Shown: piece after piece, positions 1-10,180 of the stretch | Layout: each line of letters opens with the position of its first letter | Numbering within the stretch: the stretch's first letter is position 1 | DNA from: Amoeboradix gromovi X-113 | Lineage: Eukaryota; Fungi; Sanchytriomycota | Length of the DNA stretch: 10,180 bases | Direction: 5' to 3' | Assembly (NCBI GenBank): GCA_018985225.1 | Contig: JADGIF010000357.1 | Location: 1-10,180 of the forward strand | Notes under the pieces: model-generated | Seen by the model: only the letters and a program-made list of their open reading frames with translations | What the model was told of the DNA's origin: nothing | The model's database searches: none | Position numbers and translations under genes: made by a program

Positions 1-84
1 GTGATAGATAGTTTGCTAGCGAATGGTGAGAGACCAGGCTGGCAACAAAGGATCACTGATAAAGTAGTTTCGCCTATTACCTAG
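1..84 (+). CDS. 3' end (partial) of a putative Fanzor/TnpB-family RNA-guided nuclease: VIDSLLANGERPGWQQRITDKVVSPIT*
   Basis: Frame 1 is open to TAG at 82-84 and the frame is preserved in the second copy. The G-x-R-P-x-aromatic-x-x-R tail resembles Fanzor1 C-termini. It is followed by a hairpin and a TIR-type end shared with the CxxC/RD-containing element at 9203-9680. Confidence 0.6.
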   Translation: MIDSLLANGERPGWQQRITDKVVSPIT

Positions 85-182
85 GTGAAGAAATATGGGA
101 CACTGCTGTGAAAATTTCAACTGGGTAAATCTCGTCACCCGCTTTTTACCCCTAGTCTAGTTTTTACAGAGCATGTCCCATA
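1..182 (+). repeat. Left copy of a 182-bp inverted repeat (partner at 9984-10165); right end of a TIR transposon, probably Fanzor-encoding; truncated by the window edge
   Basis: Manual alignment of 1-182 to the reverse complement of 9984-10165 is ungapped with 11 mismatches (positions 4, 39, 63, 79, 105, 115, 129, 139, 152, 153, 160). Similarity stops abruptly after TGTCCCA-TA. Confidence 0.95.
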
Positions 183-197
183 CCAATAAATGACCTT
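94..197 (+). ncRNA. Putative omegaRNA: scaffold hairpin 96-180 plus flank-derived guide from about 181 (TACCAATAAATGACC...)
   Basis: Stems 94-102/174-182, 106-115/160-169, 120-122/154-156 and 123-129/145-151. All 7 differences from the second copy in this stretch are compatible with the structure. It sits directly downstream of the ORF stop and overlaps the element end. RNA boundaries are approximate. Confidence 0.55.
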
Positions 198-464
198 GCA
201 TTTGAATCACATATAGTGAAAATTAATCATTCCTATCTGCAATTCACTCATGATGATCAATATAAATCATTTGTCGTGTTCACAGATAAACAAGCGTAAA
301 CCCTAGAAAATATGAATCTATGAGTATTTCGATTTTGCAATTGTATAATTAAACACGGTTCCATTGATTCTCTTAAACACCTACAAGAGCGCCTCTGGGT
401 GATACTTGGGCCTTTTCGCAAAGCGTGTGTCATGTTTTTTTTTCAGTCCAGTCGTTTCAGGAAG

Positions 465-1046
465 ATGCCAGACTGGGAAAAGTTCTGGAATTCGGACAAC
501 ATTCCATGGGATCAAGGCGACTGCACGCCAGCTTTTAAACATGCGGTGACTAGCGGATATTTCAAAGGTAACGTATTGATACCTGGATGTGGGTATGGAT
601 GGGACGTTTTGTACCTTGCAAAGAACTCAGATTGCAACGTGACTGGTCTAGACCTCTCACCTAGTTGCATCAAAAAGTGCGTCGAGAAACATGGAAGTTC
701 AAAAAATTTCAAATTTGTAGAAGGTGATTTTTTTGCTCAAGCTGTAAATCCGGCACAAGTGAAATACGACAGCGCTTTTGACTATACGTTTTTCTGTGCC
801 ATTGATATTGAAATGAGACCAGCATGGGGCAAGACATATTCTAATTTAATTCATTCCGGTGGCCATTTGATTACCTTGATGTTTCCATTAAAAGAAAAGG
901 TGGAAGTTGGGCCACCACATACTGTTAGTTTAGAAGAATATCAGCAAGCATTGTTAGATTTTACACTGGTCCAAAGAATTAGCGACATTGAAAGTTTCCC
1001 CAATAGAGTTGGATACGAAGAGTTGGCAATTTGGAGAAGAAAATAA
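465..1046 (+). CDS. SAM-dependent methyltransferase, TPMT/thiol-halide (HOL-like) family
   Basis: WEKFW...IPWD, VLIPGCGYGWD (SAM motif I), VTGLDLS, GDFF, FDYTFFCAI, LITLMFP and GPPH motifs. The likely start is ATG 465 (MPDWEKFW) rather than GTG 399. Confidence 0.9.
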   Translation: MPDWEKFWNSDNIPWDQGDCTPAFKHAVTSGYFKGNVLIPGCGYGWDVLYLAKNSDCNVTGLDLSPSCIKKCVEKHGSSKNFKFVEGDFFAQAVNPAQVKYDSAFDYTFFCAIDIEMRPAWGKTYSNLIHSGGHLITLMFPLKEKVEVGPPHTVSLEEYQQALLDFTLVQRISDIESFPNRVGYEELAIWRRK

Positions 1047-1861
1047 ATATGATGTTTGCAACCAATCATTTTGGTATAATAGAGCACCTTCATTTTTAAA
1101 CTGTACTAGAGCCTAGCGGAACAAATTTAACAATAACAAAATTAAATGTTGGTCCTCGTTAAATTTTTGATCTACTGGAAATTAGTAATTTTCAGAGAAA
1201 CCGACAGAGCGACTAGATCAGTTATAGCGGCTACTCAAGCTTCCGTTGTTCTGATGCAGGATTGAAGTAAGATGGATATACTTCAAGTATATGCTGCTTG
1301 CTGCTATATGATGGCAATCGAATTTCAAATGATAATTTATGCATATACAGGTCTCCAAGCCGTTTACAATAGTGTACTGTAACTTGCACAATTACATTCT
1401 ACCTATGTTAGTCCATTATTCATGGATTAGCAGCCAGGTTATCCTGCTTTAACTAACTAAAAAAGTACGAGCAAGAAGGCTATTCAATTTGTAGTATTTA
1501 TGGTTACGATAAACTATTTGTTGAATTAAAATCGATGGCTGCTCCAATTAATACAAACAGCGCGTGCTTTATGAAAATTTACTTACAAATTTTCGCGTAA
1601 CTCAATCCTGTCGTAAGTACTGAAGTGTCCCCTTTAATACTGCTAGTTCTCTATAGCATTAATCAATACTATTAGTGTTAAATTGAAAATATTGCCCCTC
1701 CATCACCATGTTAATAGTTAATTTCAGGTGTTAACGGCCACTGCATTACAAGTGAGATTCAGATTTCGCGTCCGTTTATGCAAAACCAATTGGTCTATTA
1801 AGATGGCTCTCATATACCAATCAAGAAATTCACATATAAACAAGAAACATGAGCCATCTCA

Positions 1862-3094
1862 ATGATTGAGCTATTACTACACACTCTTGTTTCGTGTACT
1901 ACTTCAGTGTCTGTAAATGTAAAAACAGATATGTCATCTACAAGTAGAAGTGTACTATCTACTGAAAACTCAAGCTCATTTGTATCAACATCATATAACA
2001 GCACTCTGTGGGGCTCAGAAATTTCGGAAGACACAAATGTTCCGTCTTTAACTGATTGCGAAAGAGTAGCAATATTGGCAAAAGGGGTTGGAATGGATAA
2101 AGGTCGGCCAGAAAAATGGAATCTTATTCTGCAAGATTGCTGCCAGCAAGGTACTGGGGTTGGTTGCAATAACGGAATTGTTCATGTTATAGATTGGAGC
2201 GGTCTATTCTTGGGCGGAACCATAGTACAAGAAGGGTTACCAAAGAGACTGCTTTATTTGTATTTAGGAATAAGTGTAGCAGACCTTGGTAATGAAAACA
2301 GGTTAACGGGAACCATTCCTCGAGATTTACCTCCATTTCTACAAGGCCTAGACTTATCGCACAATAATCTGTTTGGAACCCTTCCGAATCTTCCAGACAC
2401 ACTGATTGAAGGAATATTTTCTAACAATTTGCTTAACGGAACCTTGCCACAGTACCTTCCCTCAAATATAAATACTTTTTTAATTGACGGGAATCTCATG
2501 TCTGGGCCACTACCAGAGTATTACCCAGACACGCTCACCAAATTCAGCATTGGTTCTAAATATCCTCGGGGAAAAAACAGATTCACAGGTGGTGTATATT
2601 TAAATGCTCCGTTTTCCTTTTATTGTAACTACAATTATGTTACGGACGTTCAGTTTAACGACTTAAGCGCCTTGGACATTTGTGATATTTCAAACACACC
2701 AATGCTTGAGCACGCCGGTGATTCGAGCTTGCAATCCTGCATAGCGACGAATCTTTATTCAGCAAGCAGTTTACCTGTAACTGCAAGCCCCAGAAATGTT
2801 ACAAGGACGGTAAAGCCTAAATCTTCAACCACTACGATTTCAATGCGAACTGGATCACCATCTTCCCGTCGCAGTTCTCTTTCTACGTCACTTAAAGCTA
2901 AAACCATATCAAAAACAACAACCTTGAGTCCTGCAAAACACAAAACAACTAGTATTACCAAGAAGTCAAGCACAACAAAGTCAAAAACTGCTTTAAATTA
3001 TGGCACAAACACAGAAATACTAGAAGAATCGATTGCTGCTCGTTTACAAGTATATCTAGCTGCAAGTGTAGCAGTCTCTCTGATATTTTATTAA
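1862..3094 (+). CDS. Secreted or cell-surface leucine-rich repeat protein with a Ser/Thr-rich stalk and hydrophobic C-terminus
   Basis: Hydrophobic N-terminus and a Cys-containing cap (DCC...GVGC...IDWSGLFLGGTI). Plant-like LRRs (NRLTGTIP, LDLSHNNLFGTLP, NNLLNGTLP, GNLMSGPLP) are followed by an S/T/K-rich region and the C-terminal VYLAASVAVSLIFY. Confidence 0.85.
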   Translation: MIELLLHTLVSCTTSVSVNVKTDMSSTSRSVLSTENSSSFVSTSYNSTLWGSEISEDTNVPSLTDCERVAILAKGVGMDKGRPEKWNLILQDCCQQGTGVGCNNGIVHVIDWSGLFLGGTIVQEGLPKRLLYLYLGISVADLGNENRLTGTIPRDLPPFLQGLDLSHNNLFGTLPNLPDTLIEGIFSNNLLNGTLPQYLPSNINTFLIDGNLMSGPLPEYYPDTLTKFSIGSKYPRGKNRFTGGVYLNAPFSFYCNYNYVTDVQFNDLSALDICDISNTPMLEHAGDSSLQSCIATNLYSASSLPVTASPRNVTRTVKPKSSTTTISMRTGSPSSRRSSLSTSLKAKTISKTTTLSPAKHKTTSITKKSSTTKSKTALNYGTNTEILEESIAARLQVYLAASVAVSLIFY

Positions 3095-3132
3095 TTGAAT
3101 AAATAGCATCTTACAGCATTTATTAAACAAAC

Positions 3133-4032
3133 TTACACCTCTTCTGATAAGTTACTATTTCTGCTAATTGTAAAGTCTAAACTCTGGAAATTCCAGTTTC
3201 CACCGCTTGCACTTTGCGATCTGCCTATCGGTATAAAAGACTCTCTTATTTGCCTCAATTTGACTTGCTTTAATATCAAGTATACGATGCAATTTAGAAA
3301 GCCTTGCAATGGCAATGTCAGCGCTTGTAACACGGTTAACATATAGACCTGTTGCCCTGTGATTAATTGCACAATTCTGGTGATGCTGCTAGGTCCAAAG
3401 CTGAATATAAATGCCACAACATACAATAATTGCCGCTGTCCACTCCGCATTAGGTTTTTATTTTTAGGAAATTTGCCTGTCAGCGATCGAATGTACCACA
3501 TAACCATTAAGCTTACAATTATGTTGAAAAAGACACTAAAAAATACAAATGCATAAAATGTGCCAAATCTTAACCCTATATACTGGGCGCGATACCAGCA
3601 CCACGCACCAACAACTCCAAAGGCGTCTTGATACACAGCCACCGTATTACCAATTATAGGAATACCCCAAGCAACTATATGGTAAATATACTCCAGTTTA
3701 TTTGCCTTGTCTCTATGCATGTTGAACACAACTCGGAGCAAAACATTCATAACAAAACAGCAATTCCACAAAGGGCCACTTACAGCCATTTCTACAAAAA
3801 CACCCTGAATCATACAACCAACAGGAGATGCGAATACAAATTCACCAATAAAAAAGTTTATACTCCCCACGATATCCAAGGCGCTCATGTATAGAATGAT
3901 CCGGTTGCTCAAGTTACTTTGGTATACGTTGTTACTTTTTAGAAATCTGAAAACTAGAAATATGCTCCCTATTATTGACAAAGTGCTAGAGACTTTAGTT
4001 ATGGCGTTCAGGGTTGGGTCATGTTCAACCAT
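3133..4032 (-). CDS. 7-TM G-protein-coupled receptor, cAMP-receptor-like (Dicty_CAR/Git3 class)
   Basis: Seven hydrophobic segments with SSTLSIIGS, NRIILYMSALD, GCMIQG, YHIVAWGIP, GAWCW and PLQGFLNCIVY. The likely start is MVEHDP at 4032; the ORF is open from 4143. Confidence 0.88.
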   Translation of the reverse strand: MVEHDPTLNAITKVSSTLSIIGSIFLVFRFLKSNNVYQSNLSNRIILYMSALDIVGSINFFIGEFVFASPVGCMIQGVFVEMAVSGPLWNCCFVMNVLLRVVFNMHRDKANKLEYIYHIVAWGIPIIGNTVAVYQDAFGVVGAWCWYRAQYIGLRFGTFYAFVFFSVFFNIIVSLMVMWYIRSLTGKFPKNKNLMRSGQRQLLYVVAFIFSFGPSSITRIVQLITGQQVYMLTVLQALTLPLQGFLNCIVYLILKQVKLRQIRESFIPIGRSQSASGGNWNFQSLDFTISRNSNLSEEV

Positions 4033-4261
4033 TTTATGATTCTTGAGTAGTTTTAAGTTATATATATTTGGGGTAGACGTTGCTGTTCGTCTGATGAGTC
4101 TGCCACGCGGGTGATTAGTCAAGTGCCTTATGGAACCATACATTCACATTTTTTAGAACTATGCCGTATGTGTATCAACATGTAAGGTATGTAAGGGAAT
4201 CAGTGAAAGAGCCATTCTAGATACGTAAGTACTAGATTTAATGATTTGTATCATCGAAACA

Positions 4262-5449
4262 ATGTTTAAACGTTTCGCTTCAAAATTCAATTATAAAGAT
4301 GCATTTATAATGGACAAATTGTTGACTAATGAAGAGAAGCAGATTTACGAGAGCGCTCAAAAGTACAAATCCCAGTTGTTTAAACGGGTGGTGAACGGAA
4401 ACAGAAATGAAAAGTTTGACCGTCAAATAATGACTGAAATGGGTGAGTTAGGTTTCCTAGGATGTACGATATCGGGTTATAATTGCAGTGGTGTTTCCAG
4501 TGTAGCGTATGGTTTGATAGCTAATCAAGTAGAATATGTGGATAGTGGCTATAGATCAGCGATGAGTGTTCAGAGCAGCTTAGTAATGCACCCGATCAAT
4601 GAGTTTGGTACTGAAGCACTGAAGTCCAAATATCTGCCACAGTTAGCTGCTGGTACAATGGTCGGGTGCTTCGGATTAACTGAACCTGACTTTGGTTCCG
4701 ACCCGAGTTCTATGAAAACAGTGGCTAAAGAAGTAGATGGTGGATACGTGTTAAACGGAAGTAAAAACTGGATAACAAACTCTCCTATTGCTGATATTTG
4801 TGTAGTTTGGGCCAAATGTCAATGGGATAATAAGATTCGTGGGTTTATAGTGGAACGTAGTGACAAGGGCCTAGAAACTCCTAAAATTGAGGGCAAGTTT
4901 TCATTAAGAGCGTCAACAACAGGCATGATTATGCTTGATAATTGCTTCATTCCTTCTGAGCGTATTTTAAGTGTGGAAGGCTTGAAAGGACCATTTTCTT
5001 GCTTGAATAATGCAAGATTTGGCATTGCTTGGGGTGCCCTTGGTGCTGCCCAAGCTTGTGTTGATGTTGCATTAAACTATTGTCTAGAAAGAAGACAATT
5101 TGGGGTGCCTCTGGCATCTTTTCAGTTAATACAAAAAAAATTAGCGGATGCAGTTACTGAAATAAATCTAGGGTTATTAGGATGTTTGCAAGGTGCAAGG
5201 TTAAAAGATACCAAGGAATTGCCGTTGGAAACAATTAGCTTACTTAAGAGAAACTCATGTGGAAAGGCATTAGTAATTGCTAGAGATTGCAGAGATATGT
5301 TGGGTGGAAATGGAATTAGCGATGAGTACCACATCATTAGACATGTTATGAATTTAGAAGCAGTAAACACTTACGAAGGAACCCATGACATCCATGCTCT
5401 AATTTTAGGGCGGGGAATTACAGGGATTCAAGCATTTTCTAAACAATAA
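4262..5449 (+). CDS. GCDH: Glutaryl-CoA dehydrogenase, mitochondrial
   Basis: [46 protein letters not shown] and [25 protein letters not shown]. The likely start MFKRFASK at 4262 looks like a short presequence; the ORF is open from 4241. Confidence 0.95.
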
Positions 5450-5558
5450 ACAATCAAGTTCTGTGTTTAAACTCTTTTAATGGTAGACATCTAATAGCCC
5501 GATTTCTCTTTTGCTCTTGATACTTCCTGTTACTCGTCCTTTCTACCTTTTGTAGAGC

Positions 5559-6588
5559 ATGTTCCGTGTGCTTTCTTGGTGGACGTTTTTAAATAAAAAG
5601 CCACACTATAGTTCTTTAATGAAGAAGCTAAAAAACAATGTAGTGAACCCATTGACTGGTGAAAATATTGAGATCGCTGATGAATTAAGAGAAGAACAAT
5701 CTAAAGGAGAGAGTGTTCACGCTGCAAGTGCAGATAACCAGTTATACCAAAAACTGGAGCATGCAGTACTTAGGTGGTTGAATTCCATTTTCAACTCACA
5801 AGGAATTATAGTTAGAAATATTGGTGAAGAATGCAACGACGGTATATTGCTGGGACGGGTTTTGAATAAAGTTTTTAAGACTCCGTATAATCCAGCTGCG
5901 GTTTTAACAGATGGTAATAGAAGACAAAATATTGAAGATTTATTTGTTGTGTTGAGGGATGTTCACGGAATTCAAGAATGTGATGATTACAACCAAGAAT
6001 GTATTTTATGTTTATATAGTATTATATGAATCCAGTGGAGTAGCAGTTATTTCATTACTATGCGATTTATTTAGAAAGCTAGCTAATCCACCATTCGAAA
6101 TGCCAAGTCAGGATATTGAAGTTGCAGTTATTCGTAAGGAAAAGGTTAATGGCATATCTACTGCAAGAACCAAAAAAATCGTAATAAAGGCGTGGGACAA
6201 AAAAGCTGCTGTAGAGGATAAAAAGATGTATCTTGAAGACGAGATAATTTATAAAATGTACTCTTATGCTCCAAATGAGTTTAGAAGGCTGCAGTCCTTG
6301 ATAGTACAACTAGTTAATGTTATGCTTGATGAATCATCAGTCGCCACAATTATGGACTTAAAAGATCCTCTTATACTTGAAGCAATTCTAAACATTATCG
6401 TAATTAAAACTTCAAATATTAAACCTGATTTTAAAGAAAAAGACCCTTGGAAGCGTGTTGTACATCTATGGAAACCTTATCTAAATGACCATTTTGACGA
6501 GTCTAATGGTCTCAACGAGTACACATTAACAAAATGGATGTATTATACCATCAATAAGTATCAGTTTATAAAATCTAAAAAACAATAA
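5559..6588 (+). CDS. Parvin-like calponin-homology protein; two exons (5559-6000 and 6020-6588) joined by a 19-nt intron
   Basis: KLEHAVLRWLNSIF...IIVRNIGEECNDGILLGRVLNKV resembles parvin CH1. IEVAVIRKEKVNG and YKMYSYAPNEF...LIVQLVN resemble the parvin linker and CH2 start. Removing GT..AG 6001-6019 fuses the two listed ORFs in frame. The start could be 5559 or 5619. Confidence 0.75.
6001..6019 (+). other. Putative 19-nt spliceosomal intron GTATTTTATGTTTATATAG
   Basis: GT..AG ends, AT-rich, and located within the overlap where the frame changes. The spliced product reads ...YNQE-L-LYESSGVAVISLL... Confidence 0.7.
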
Positions 6589-6614
6589 AGATAGCTATCA
6601 TGACTAAAGTATAT

Positions 6615-8558
6615 TTACTCTTGCTGCCATTTGTAATTCACTACAATATCATCTGCTCTTTCTTCATTCAATTTCAGTTTCCCTAAATTGGTAGTGGATT
6701 GAATTCTACTTAATGCTGGACTCACTGACTTACCAATATTTGGTAGTGCATCGTCTGGTATTGTTAATCCGTAATGTCGCTTTAGTGCCAATCTTCTTGC
6801 TTTTTGGTACTCAATGCCCAATACTTTCCAATCCAATAAATCACTCAATCGCTCCGTTCTGTTTCTTAACTGAATTCTTTCTCTTCTTGATAATTTGCAG
6901 AAGTGCATCATGTGTTTAACAATTTCTTCAATACTTTCATCGACTGATTTCATTCTTCTGTCTACAATAAAAATTCCATACTCGTGCGTGTCTTTAATAA
7001 TCTCATCCATATAACATCCGAACCCACTTAGGTTAGTAGTTATACTGGGTACGCCTAATACGGTACATTCTGCGGGTGTATATCCCCAAGGTTCGTAATA
7101 AGATGGAAATACACCTAGATGGCAGCCTCGAACAAACTCTTCATACTCTATAGGAAACAACGGGCTATTGGCACTTAAAAACTCTGGGTGAAAGACTATC
7201 TTCACTCTGTCGTGGCTAGAGTTGAAAAGCTGTAATCTTCGAATGTCTTGTAGAACTGGATCATCACTAGAATCTGTCATATTATGGGTAACCACTGCAG
7301 GTGGAAGATCTCTCTTTAATGCCAGCACTCTTCTTTTTAATTGAATCTTTTCTTCTTTAGTTAACAAGTCCACTGTTGGCTGAATTCCTTTTAAACACAT
7401 TTCATATAATCTTTTGCCAATTTTCTGCTGTACATCTTCAACAGTAGCTTGCAATTGCTTGACCACTGCCTGACCTTTCATACTATCAACTGTGTAGCTC
7501 TGGTTACTTGCATGTGTGATAATAAAAGCAACAACTGTCATTTTAGATTTACTCTCTTTTAATCTCCAATTCAACCTAGCCAGTGATTCCAAATACATGT
7601 CAATGCCTTTGTTACGGTATTCGTATCTACCAGCGGTAAAGAAATACAGCGTATTGTCCAAATCAAAGTCTAAATGTCCATAGAAGTGGCCTCTGACAAA
7701 ATTGCTAATCTTCTCTTTGGCTTGCGCATGAAGGTTTTGAAATTCGTGTACAGCGGCAAATTTAGTGACATTTAATCCGTTGGGTGTTACACCATCGGGT
7801 TTTCGCTTTAAGAGCGATTCTGCTTCATATGCCGTTATGTGACTTACAGTCGTGAAAACATCAGCATTATGAGCTGCCCCTCGTTCAATACAATAGCGAT
7901 GATATATCTGACGCTGTCCAGCTTCTTTATCTACATCAAATGACTTCAAGTTATTATAAAAATCAGTTTCACCCGCACAGAGATATCTGCCCAACAGCGT
8001 TGCATGCGTAGTAAATATTGTGGCAATATTAAGATTCCAGGATCTGATAAGTGGTAAGCAAACGCCGCCCAGCCATTCGTGAGCGTGAACAACTACAGGG
8101 TTAGATTTTTGACGAGATACATACTCAGATACGAACCAAGCGACAACAAACCCAAACACAGTAGCGTTGTTTTGTTCCGTATCCTCGTCATAACTAGGTA
8201 CTTTGCAAACTTCCCATAATTCCTTTTTCCACTCTGGTAGTTTGTACCACAAACTACCCAAGTCAAACAAAATGACATAAGGGCTTCCTTCAATTAGCCA
8301 TCTACCAGTTAATACATTTAACCCTTCGTTTTTCAACACTTCCAAGCTCTCCTTAATAAATGGACCAAGTAGCGAGGCATCAACAGGTTCTACCTCAACA
8401 CTAGCATGCTTCTGGTTTAACATACCAAGCATGATATATTTACCTGGATAATAAGCAGAAGTAGTGGCTGCCTTTGTCCTGATAACAGTGTAAATTCCTC
8501 CTACCTTGTTGGCTACTTCATGTGAGACCTCAAATAGTTGTGTATCTTCAATTTTCAT
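6615..8558 (-). CDS. GSY: Glycogen synthase (GT3, fungal/animal type)
   Basis: EVANKVGGIYTV, HAHEW, FTTHATLLGR, AGRYEYRNKG, catalytic YYEPWGYTPAE and the Arg cluster SRRERIQLRNRTERLSDLLDW. Confidence 0.97.
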   Translation of the reverse strand: MKIEDTQLFEVSHEVANKVGGIYTVIRTKAATTSAYYPGKYIMLGMLNQKHASVEVEPVDASLLGPFIKESLEVLKNEGLNVLTGRWLIEGSPYVILFDLGSLWYKLPEWKKELWEVCKVPSYDEDTEQNNATVFGFVVAWFVSEYVSRQKSNPVVVHAHEWLGGVCLPLIRSWNLNIATIFTTHATLLGRYLCAGETDFYNNLKSFDVDKEAGQRQIYHRYCIERGAAHNADVFTTVSHITAYEAESLLKRKPDGVTPNGLNVTKFAAVHEFQNLHAQAKEKISNFVRGHFYGHLDFDLDNTLYFFTAGRYEYRNKGIDMYLESLARLNWRLKESKSKMTVVAFIITHASNQSYTVDSMKGQAVVKQLQATVEDVQQKIGKRLYEMCLKGIQPTVDLLTKEEKIQLKRRVLALKRDLPPAVVTHNMTDSSDDPVLQDIRRLQLFNSSHDRVKIVFHPEFLSANSPLFPIEYEEFVRGCHLGVFPSYYEPWGYTPAECTVLGVPSITTNLSGFGCYMDEIIKDTHEYGIFIVDRRMKSVDESIEEIVKHMMHFCKLSRRERIQLRNRTERLSDLLDWKVLGIEYQKARRLALKRHYGLTIPDDALPNIGKSVSPALSRIQSTTNLGKLKLNEERADDIVVNYKWQQE

Positions 8559-9202
8559 ACGGAGTGTTTATGATGCCACTCGGAAAAACTCTAAAATTTA
8601 TAGACACTTGGACATGTTCTGTTAAAATTAGAGTGAGAGTAAGCCGATAAAAATAAGGATGCTGTGTGCACTGCAAACCGAAAATTGCAGTATGTGAATC
8701 CTGCTAGGCCACTGCACTAACTCTTGAACCATTAATAACACCAGCAAACTCGGAAAAGGTGATGAATTCAATCAACCGCGTATTTCTAACGCTCTCTTCC
8801 GCCTCAAAGACTATTATCCTGGATCACTGTAATTAAATACGTCTGAGTTGGAGGGTATTGACTGCTTCAATATAATCAGAACAGCCGTATAAAAAGTTCT
8901 ATTACTATATTTGGTTCTTTTCTACGTAGTTCGTCTTTGATGTGTAGTGGTCTTGACAGCTTCCTCTTTTGACACTTCAGTAGATAGATAACAACTTACT
9001 GAAATTTATAACCGTCTTTACACAAATTCAGAATAACAATCGTGTTCATTTTCCTTTGCATACCAAGGGTTACTGAAATACACAGCCCATACTCAAGCAC
9101 TAAAAAGTATAAATAAATTTACTAACGCTAGTCTTACAAAATCTATCGATTTGAATACTTTTTCAAGTCTTCATGTCAGGTGTGACATCTTAATTTTACA
9201 AT

Positions 9203-9680
9203 TGGGACATCAAATATAAAAACTGGACTAACTTTCTATAACAACTTGGCACATTATTTCAGCTTTATCAATTTTATGGATTCAAGAGGCGAATGGACAT
9301 TCAGCTAGTTGCGGAGTTGACGAGTATAAAGGAGAATAAATATTCTGTACAGCTATTCTCTTACTATTTCATCCAATCTTTATTTCAAATAAAATATCAC
9401 TATTACACTTCAAAGAAATAGATAAGAGTAATGATGTTAGTATAACATTACAAAATGGCTCTAGAAAAGAGTACCGTCTAAGAAGATGCACCTTTTGCTT
9501 AGATGCTCAACGACCTTGCATACTTGAAAGAGATGCAGGGTCTTCTAGTTTTATTTTAAAAAGAGGAATACAATCAATGAAAGAAAATTGGTATAATAGA
9601 TCTTTTATTAATGATAGAATTTCCTCCGTATGGAGCACCTTTAAAAACGAGTTAGTCTAGTTTTTATATTTGGTGTCCCA
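9203..9680 (+). mobile_element. 478-bp non-autonomous TIR DNA transposon with a Fanzor/TnpB-like remnant and a 3-bp TSD (AAT)
   Basis: TIRs at 9203-9233 (TGGGACATCAAATATAAAAACTGGACTAACT) and 9650-9680 match at 29/31. AAT lies at 9200-9202 and 9681-9683. The right end matches 153-180 at 22/28. Confidence 0.88.
9340..9660 (+). pseudogene. Degenerate C-terminal fragment of a Fanzor/TnpB-like nuclease (Zn-finger and RuvC-III)
   Basis: A stop-free stretch of 106 codons with no upstream ATG: ...GSRKEYRLRRCTFCLDAQRPCILERDAGSSSFILKRG... CxxC is at 9487-9498 and RD at 9529-9534. YYTSKK* lies in the adjacent frame at 9401-9421, and VDEY is in frame at 9316-9327 before a stop. Confidence 0.6.
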
Positions 9681-9695
9681 AATGTAACACTTGAA
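9631..9695 (+). ncRNA. Putative shortened omegaRNA-like hairpin (9631-9680) with flanking guide (AATGTAACACTTGAA)
   Basis: TGGAGCACC (9631-9639) pairs with GGTGTCCCA (9672-9680), with one mismatch and one G-U. TAAAAAC (9642-9648) pairs with GTTTTTA (9660-9666). The architecture matches 96-180. Confidence 0.4.
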
Positions 9696-9968
9696 TTTAT
9701 TGAATTTTAGACTTTGTTTACTTTTAAATTTGAAATCAGGTACTGAGACTTGCTCCATTTTTCATAGTAACGCTACTTGTGCTAATGTCCTTTTGAAATA
9801 AACGTAGCCCAAATTTCGCAATCAGAAGAAGCGTATTCAGAGTTGATGTTCTCACCAAAACTCAGGGTTCCTTAGAAAACCAAGAACCCCCACAGAGATA
9901 CTAAAGCCTCAAGTCACTCCAATATGCTGGTTGTACCTTCCACCACTTTTAGGCGCAATGTAATATGA

Positions 9969-10072
9969 ACGCACATACTTCTATATGGGACATGCTCTGT
10001 AAAAAGTAGACTGTGGGTAAAAAGCGAGTGACGAGACTTACCCAGTTGAACTTTTCACAGTAGTGTCCCATA
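9969..10072 (-). ncRNA. Putative omegaRNA, second copy: scaffold 10070-9986 plus guide from 9985 downward (TATAGAAGTATGTGC...)
   Basis: Same hairpin as 96-180, with a G-C pair replacing U-G and a different downstream flank. Confidence 0.55.
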
Positions 10073-10165
10073 TTTCTTCACCTAGGCAATAGGCGAAACT
10101 ACATTATCAGTGATCCTTTGTTGCCAACCTGGTCTCTCACCATTCGCTAGCAAACTATCTACCAC
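9984..10165 (-). repeat. Right copy of the 182-bp inverted repeat; the element probably continues beyond the window
   Basis: The reverse complement matches 1-182 at 171/182 with no gaps. Confidence 0.95.
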
Positions 10166-10180
10166 TTGAAGATTATTACA
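10082..10180 (-). CDS. 3' end (partial) of a second putative Fanzor/TnpB-family nuclease: CNNLQVVDSLLANGERPGWQQRITDNVVSPIA*
   Basis: 33 codons open from the window edge to TAG at 10084-10082. xN-hydrophobic...G-x-RP-x-W-x-x-R fits the segment that follows the RuvC-III RDxNA motif in Fanzors. Confidence 0.62.
   Translation of the reverse strand, partial: CNNLQVVDSLLANGERPGWQQRITDNVVSPIA

Follow-up and report, generated by a model that had tools for sequence, protein, structure and literature searches.

The question raised by contig JADGIF010000357.1 of the fungus Amoeboradix gromovi X-113 is whether three related loci that resemble Fanzors, the eukaryotic RNA-guided nucleases, encode such enzymes. 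The window analysed here is the whole contig (C610; 10,180 nt). Our data suggest that the three loci are very probably non-autonomous derivatives of Fanzor1-carrying terminal inverted repeat (TIR) transposons that would be moved and guided in trans, the arrangement described for Spu-1 and its "ghosts". A. gromovi is an algal parasite with a 10.5 Mb genome of 36.3% GC in 1167 contigs (PMC8371127). The assembly around C610 comprises 10.55 Mb in 1319 contigs, in line with the compact fungal genome proposed by a first-pass annotation made from the sequence alone.

That annotation described near-identical open reading frame (ORF) C-termini at both edges of the window, each followed by a hairpin and a common terminus. 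We observed the same: positions 1-180 (plus strand) and 9986-10165 (minus strand) agree at 169 of 180 positions. Both repeats hold one common reading frame ending at TAG (82-84 on the plus strand, 10084-10082 on the minus strand), and 3' of the TAG an 85-nt hairpin closes on the TGTCCCA terminus quoted earlier, the second copy being a CAGTCTAC variant. The complete TIR element with a CxxC...RD remnant was recovered at 9203-9680, flanked by inverted repeats at 9196-9233 and 9650-9687 (92% identity). The window contains four matches to the TIR pattern, compared with none in 200 shuffled versions. The edge repeats are here called family A and the internal element, a miniature inverted-repeat transposable element (MITE), family B. 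The features are as follows.

1-84, plus strand: final 27 codons and stop codon of a Fanzor1 frame of family A; the contig begins inside the element and overlaps the end of contig C184.
96-180, plus strand: right-end hairpin, candidate omegaRNA scaffold, whose 3' arm is the right TIR (153-180); −30.5 kcal/mol, z −4.65.
181-195, plus strand: unique flank, putative guide source by analogy with SpuFz1; flanks vary among copies.
9203-9680, plus strand: family-B MITE ("ghost"), 478 bp, both TIRs present.
9203-9230, plus strand: family-B left TIR, with the left-flank motif CAAT directly before it.
9335-9385, plus strand: 5' sub-terminal block of 51 nt in common with the family-A left end (86-92% identity to family-A left ends).
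9340-9660, plus strand: family-B remnant frame with the second CxxC and the RuvC-III RD of a putative separate Fanzor1 subfamily; the stop lies within the right TIR.
9631-9680, plus strand: short family-B right-end hairpin including the right TIR (9653-9680); z −2.4.
9986-10070, minus strand: right TIR of the second family-A copy with its hairpin; −33.9 kcal/mol, z −6.6.
10082-10180, minus strand: final 32 codons and stop codon of the frame in the second copy of family A; the contig stops inside the element.

Family A has at least 40 matches in the genome, 89-99% identical to the window copy. Because almost all of them lie at contig ends, we read the window edges as assembly breaks inside this multicopy repeat. 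Contig C184 overlaps the window start, and its upstream frame carries GDGS, EFRTSK-CxxC, CxxC and VDRDVNA directly before CNNL. The catalytic RD that had been predicted a few codons upstream of CNNL is present as VDRDVNACCNNL on C184 and on other contigs. The open frame of C184 matches PF07282 (E 4.9e-08), and its C-terminus is 66% identical to residues 500-593 of P0002, a metagenomic protein of 606 aa.

P0002 holds the full catalytic triad: DPG370, E538 (seven residues ahead of C545, the first cysteine), two CxxC motifs and D578. Displacement of the RuvC-II glutamate to a position about six residues ahead of the zinc finger is a Fanzor1 signature (bioRxiv 2023.08.09.552727; PMC10530073). The family-A lineage shows this shift (EFRTSKLC on C184; E538/C545 in P0002), together with a CxxC...CxxC zinc finger followed by the RuvC-III RD. 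The predicted structure of P0002 (pLDDT 73, pTM only 0.45) retrieved SpuFz, PpFz and GtFz first in Foldseek (E 5.6e-15 to 1e-9), with Fanzor2 behind (1.5e-5). With a profile of relatives (alignment A1), the top PDB match was SpuFz1 (E 1.4e-6). When searched singly against the PDB, the C184 peptide and the C1184 protein gave no match, and only profile and fold succeeded. The nearest Atlas clusters are mostly Nucleocytoviricota. At 606 aa, P0002 has the size of a Fanzor1 with its enlarged REC. By predicted fold and profile, the family-A parent is a Fanzor1, closer to Fanzor1 than to Fanzor2, and the proposed Fanzor ancestry can be narrowed to that type. The metagenome contig L083 carries a 2.1-kb element that has this TIR and a Fanzor gene, split between two gene calls, and lacks a transposase.

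The short form of family A was read from overlapping contigs. A left end that shares the TIR is found 105 nt before C184, and three overlapping pieces laid end to end give an element of ~793 bp. On C709 the same left end runs on into a long frame that is 42% identical to P0002 residues 1-217. Short-type and C709 long-type left ends part at a single base position. Read at base level, this junction shows that short family A is an in-frame deletion of ~450 codons in which most of the N-terminal lobe and RuvC-I are gone. Approximately the first 50 codons are fused in frame to approximately the last 140, leaving a ~190-codon frame with a basic N-terminus. Neither the ~790-bp family-A element nor family B has the RuvC-I DPG motif found in the relatives P0002, P0155, P0006 and P0151; judged by these sequences, the short copies are therefore Fanzor1 derivatives, not functional members. 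The D-E-D triad that the first-pass annotation proposed to look for is present in the relative P0002. The first-pass view of the three loci as candidate nucleases was not supported, since family A is mostly the short deletion and neither RuvC-I, RuvC-II nor the first CxxC is present in family B.

Ten family-A left ends reach the junction, seven of the deleted type and three of the long type (C709, C896, C526). The window edge copies could be of either type, as the assembly does not let the type be read. In its strong form, the first-pass annotation would imply that one edge copy or both are full length and possibly active as Fanzor1, with a middle that the assembler collapsed. The three long left ends run on into the parent N-terminus, both edge frames are open, and open middle fragments akin to P0002 occur on small contigs (for example C201, C324, C182 and C1196). 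We nevertheless consider a full-length edge copy rather unlikely: seven of ten informative ends are deleted, no contig of the assembly carries a complete family-A parent, and related long copies at C218 and C750 carry stops.

A third deletion family, L067 (C1182) and L068 (C485), keeps a 145-codon Fanzor1 C-terminus; its TIR is of the same type and its hairpin is shorter. In family A, in this third family and apparently also in family B, the kept N-terminal part stops near a common TIxxTL motif. At L003:736-1680 (C1129) a family-B element is nested in a decayed Fanzor1 that is followed by a family-A right end, and at L019:4527-4748 (C963) a 222-bp element joins a family-B left end to a family-A right end. 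Both may be real hybrids or assembly mis-joins.

Family B is represented by at least 40 complete copies at 84-94% identity, and a first look gave 1135 candidates for its peptide. It has the properties of a MITE: TIRs, short uniform length, high copy number and no transposase. In the window copy, 106 codons are open (9340-9657) and include CxxC-x7-ERD. No Pfam match was obtained for this peptide or for the other two window peptides. A custom profile of relatives gave it 5.5 bits only, though at the expected place, and gave nothing significant against all six frames of the window. The profile-level expectation of the first-pass annotation for 9340-9660 thus failed in Pfam, and a Fanzor origin is instead indicated by a close relative. 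Four metagenome contigs end in the family-B TIR, whose terminal base differs in one of them, L091. A Fanzor1 C-terminus encoded by this contig (profile E 2e-12) matches the family-B peptide at 16 of 32 residues (50% over 32 aa; pairwise E 1e-9), and both frames end in the same codons inside the TIR. Because this Fanzor1 end matches the family-B peptide inside the same TIR, family B is probably a second Fanzor1 subfamily in which the deletion went deeper. The earlier proposal of two subfamilies on one TIR is in agreement with families A and B.

The contigs L089-L092 are JACCDR metagenome contigs, several of which carry giant-virus-like genes by our reading. At 582-2252, L091 carries another ORF, which is Fanzor2-like. 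The family-B TIR on giant-virus-like contigs suggests an exchange of the element between large DNA viruses and the fungus. Scans of viral contigs brought up no relative, only two matches in phage DNA that are due to chance.

We observed no purifying selection on the retained frames, which drift neutrally in the sample. This bears on the idea that the ~190-codon (family A) and ~106-codon (family B) frames encode functional mini-proteins, for example RNA-binding Fanzor inhibitors. The family-A deletion is in frame and retains the basic N-terminus, and many family-B copies keep more than 100 open codons. N/S ratios ranged from 0.34 to 1.26, none significantly below neutral, 13 of 14 family-B rows contain indels, and stops are present. 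Because the retained frames drift neutrally, functional mini-proteins are highly improbable.

[quoted passage not shown] Right ends of families A and B and of five outside relatives fold more stably than shuffled sequences (z −1.9 to −6.6); the value for the metagenome relative L089 is z −4.3. Two left ends fail to fold (z +0.4 and +0.7). The family-A hairpin has 28 consensus pairs over 17 copies, almost none of them broken, and seven one-sided changes keep pairing, six via G-U. Across families the inner arm tracks the terminus, GGG with CCC and GAG with CTC (by eye, few sequences). Rfam contained no family matching the right-end hairpin. In SpuFz1, the omegaRNA carries a 14-15-nt variable extension (PMC10432273). 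Because its position matches that of the SpuFz1 omegaRNA, the right-end hairpin is a likely candidate for an omegaRNA scaffold.

The same structures could also be those of pure fossils, MITEs that keep Fanzor1 sequence by chance, with a hairpin derived from an inverted sub-terminal copy of the TIR and with no guide RNA today. Consistent with this, the family-A hairpin has no compensatory changes over 17 copies, and a search of sequencing runs found the stretch in a single DNA run and in no RNA run. The frames drift neutrally, with family-B copies often carrying indels, and many decayed Fanzor fragments occur genome-wide. Restriction of the hairpin to right ends, and its recurrence with different sequence in five outside relatives, argue otherwise, as do the inner arm that changes when GAG replaces GGG and the one-sided changes that preserve pairs. 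Spu-1 ghost RNAs, moreover, function in cells (PMC10432273). We regard the fossil explanation as possible, though doubtful.

Genome-wide, the TIR search proposed earlier gave at least 1161 exact pattern matches in 10.5 Mb (control, 0), and because of these matches we suggest ~600 elements or more. The ends fit the TGGGACA termini described before, with the reservation that the first T may be part of an ANNT target site instead of the element, in which case the terminus would be GGGACA. Recent activity, also claimed then, receives only moderate support, from the identities among family-A and family-B copies.

The flanks are asymmetric. In the first locus sample, an A lies four bases outside GGG at 26/26 left and 26/38 right ends, and it is preceded by C at 22/26 left and 17/38 right ends. 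Among family-B ends genome-wide, a sample largely separate from the first, C lies five bases outside the element at 48/49 left versus 30/51 right ends (P 1e-6). The commonest left flanks are CATA (15) and CAAA (11). Spu-1 has CA beside its left end only, and the target-adjacent motif (TAM) of SpuFz1 is CATA (PMC10432273). By this analogy, the left-flank CA-NN-T suggests a TAM prediction for the cutter. If the copies were only fossils, the left-flank bias would reflect asymmetric target choice by the transposase alone.

The target site was assessed from paired flanks. An ANNT frame is found at most ends on both flanks, and in most family-B copies the NN of the left flank is not that of the right flank. 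Since contigs of the sequencing run are ~100-base pieces across family B, mismatched flank pairs possibly arose from mis-joining by the assembler of an amplified short-read assembly. The ANNT frame suggests a Sola-like four-base target. A 3-bp AAT target-site duplication fits the window copy of family B and no other of the 13 pairs, so it was rejected as a rule. A strict TA duplication (Mariner-like, as proposed for Spu-1) was also rejected, TA being present in only 15/49 left flanks. The read layout of the run contained no empty-site allele among the joints listed.

Full-length candidate enzymes were found elsewhere in the genome. Two intact Fanzor1 frames, on C363 (L074, 685 aa) and C1184 (L078, 734 aa), are 70% identical, have the full D-E-D triad and have their own right-end hairpin. 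By sequence, they are the best nuclease candidates in the genome. PF07282 has at least 150 matches genome-wide, many of them ~600-bp Fanzor2-type deletion derivatives with a common right end. At L044 (C542:57-3245, minus strand), a long Fanzor2/TnpB frame, in which DPG, E and RD motifs are present, comes after an IS607-type serine recombinase frame; this pair adjoins an unknown ORF and a family-B end. The Fanzor2-type matches appear to be a second, separate OMEGA expansion.

For the mobiliser, transcription, loading and homing steps we infer the following. The parent would have been a ~2.1-kb element consisting of a TIR, one ~600-aa Fanzor1 ORF, the hairpin and a second TIR, with no transposase; its derivatives lost the middle. 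A host DDE transposase, a Sola-like one being the best guess, would move the elements in trans via the common TIR. The right-end hairpin and ~15 nt of flank would be transcribed as an omegaRNA and loaded by a full-length Fanzor1 encoded elsewhere in the genome. The loaded Fanzor1 would cut the empty site beside the CA-NN(T) TAM, and recombination would restore the copy, in keeping with the cut-and-restore (restorative homing) model (reviewed in PMC13565253). The genome has 29 DUF7869 matches, some of which, at C556:18982, C915:1938 and C367:9293, stand in open frames of 579-687 codons; these may be candidate mobilising transposases. A literature search found no paper on DUF7869.

Several observations weigh against derivatives moved and guided in trans. 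No transposase is tied to the TIR, and an exact four-base duplication was seen in 3 of 13 pairs (P 0.10) and 2 of 6 further ones, that is, in 5/19 assembled copies. The right ends of the C363 and C1184 genes differ from those of families A and B, so their products may not load family-A or family-B RNAs. With three of ten informative left ends being of the long type, an edge copy could be full length, and the missing compensatory changes and RNA runs count on the same side.

Between the repeats lie host genes for a TPMT-type methyltransferase, LRR-like and cAMP-receptor-like proteins, an acyl-CoA dehydrogenase, a CH-domain protein and a glycogen synthase (60-65% identity to fungal enzymes). The 19-nt GT..AG segment at 6001-6019 is a probable ultra-short intron in a parvin-like CH-domain gene, as its removal merges ORFs 5559-6029 and 5959-6588 into a 336-codon frame. 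The domain search was run on the two exons separately, and the joined translation was used for the frame check. The 410-aa product of 1862-3094 is weakly similar to LRR proteins; with its stalk rich in Ser/Thr/Lys and its hydrophobic C-terminus, it is probably a surface protein.

These elements add a divergent Fanzor1 lineage with intact candidate enzymes in this genome (P0151, P0006) and in metagenomes (P0002, P0153). With the lineage come a candidate scaffold that is defined and, from many natural insertions, a prediction of the TAM. TnpB and IscB are known to carry out restorative homing, and a review reports none for Fanzor (PMC13565253). Hundreds of ghosts and an asymmetric flank motif make Fanzor homing testable by sequence statistics and small-RNA sequencing. 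In a bolder reading, which we think improbable, the hundreds of ghosts of two Fanzor1 subfamilies would be a guide repertoire for a trans-acting Fanzor1, the left-only CA a footprint of retention by homing, and giant viruses the route of arrival. If true, the left-only CA bias would be natural evidence for restorative homing in a eukaryote. Among the matches listed, a literature search found no paper combining Fanzor with Amoeboradix or Sanchytrium.

Three known systems are comparable. Large-DNA-virus Fanzor1 elements (for example that of SfAV; bioRxiv 2023.08.09.552727) are likewise non-autonomous TIR elements with a ~606-aa Fanzor1, and the Atlas clusters and giant-virus-like contigs described above point in their direction; they differ in TIR and target, and the massive expansion here is in a cellular genome. 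In dictyostelids, Sola2-borne Fanzor1 (DFa-1 to -3, PPa-1/4/5; PMC3627910) also resides in TIR elements, some with the transposase deleted, and the AT-rich four-base target AWWT fits 33/49 left flanks here. Their TIRs are 12-21 bp, compared with ~28 bp here, where exact duplication is infrequent and a Sola transposase is not shown inside or beside the TIRs.

The closest system is Spu-1/SpuFz1 of Spizellomyces punctatus (PMC3627910, PMC10432273), a TIR element of ~2.1 kb that has a single Fanzor1 ORF and lacks a transposase. Similar to the elements described here, it has ~30-nt TIRs, a conserved CA outside the left end only, a structured 75-85 nt from stop to right end, and ~0.5-kb ghosts that outnumber full copies. 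S. punctatus has 42 Fanzor and 134 ghost loci, against at least 1161 TIR matches in A. gromovi. Here, in contrast, the ghosts are recognisable internal deletions keeping the Fanzor C-terminus, two Fanzor1 subfamilies use one TIR, and the flank is CA-NN-T with variable NN instead of a fixed TA. P0002 is only ~14% identical to SpuFz1 (structural alignment), and the system here is known from sequence alone. Overall, this system is of the known Spu-1 "Fanzor1 plus ghosts" kind at an unusual scale, with window loci that are remnants or, at best, ambiguous.

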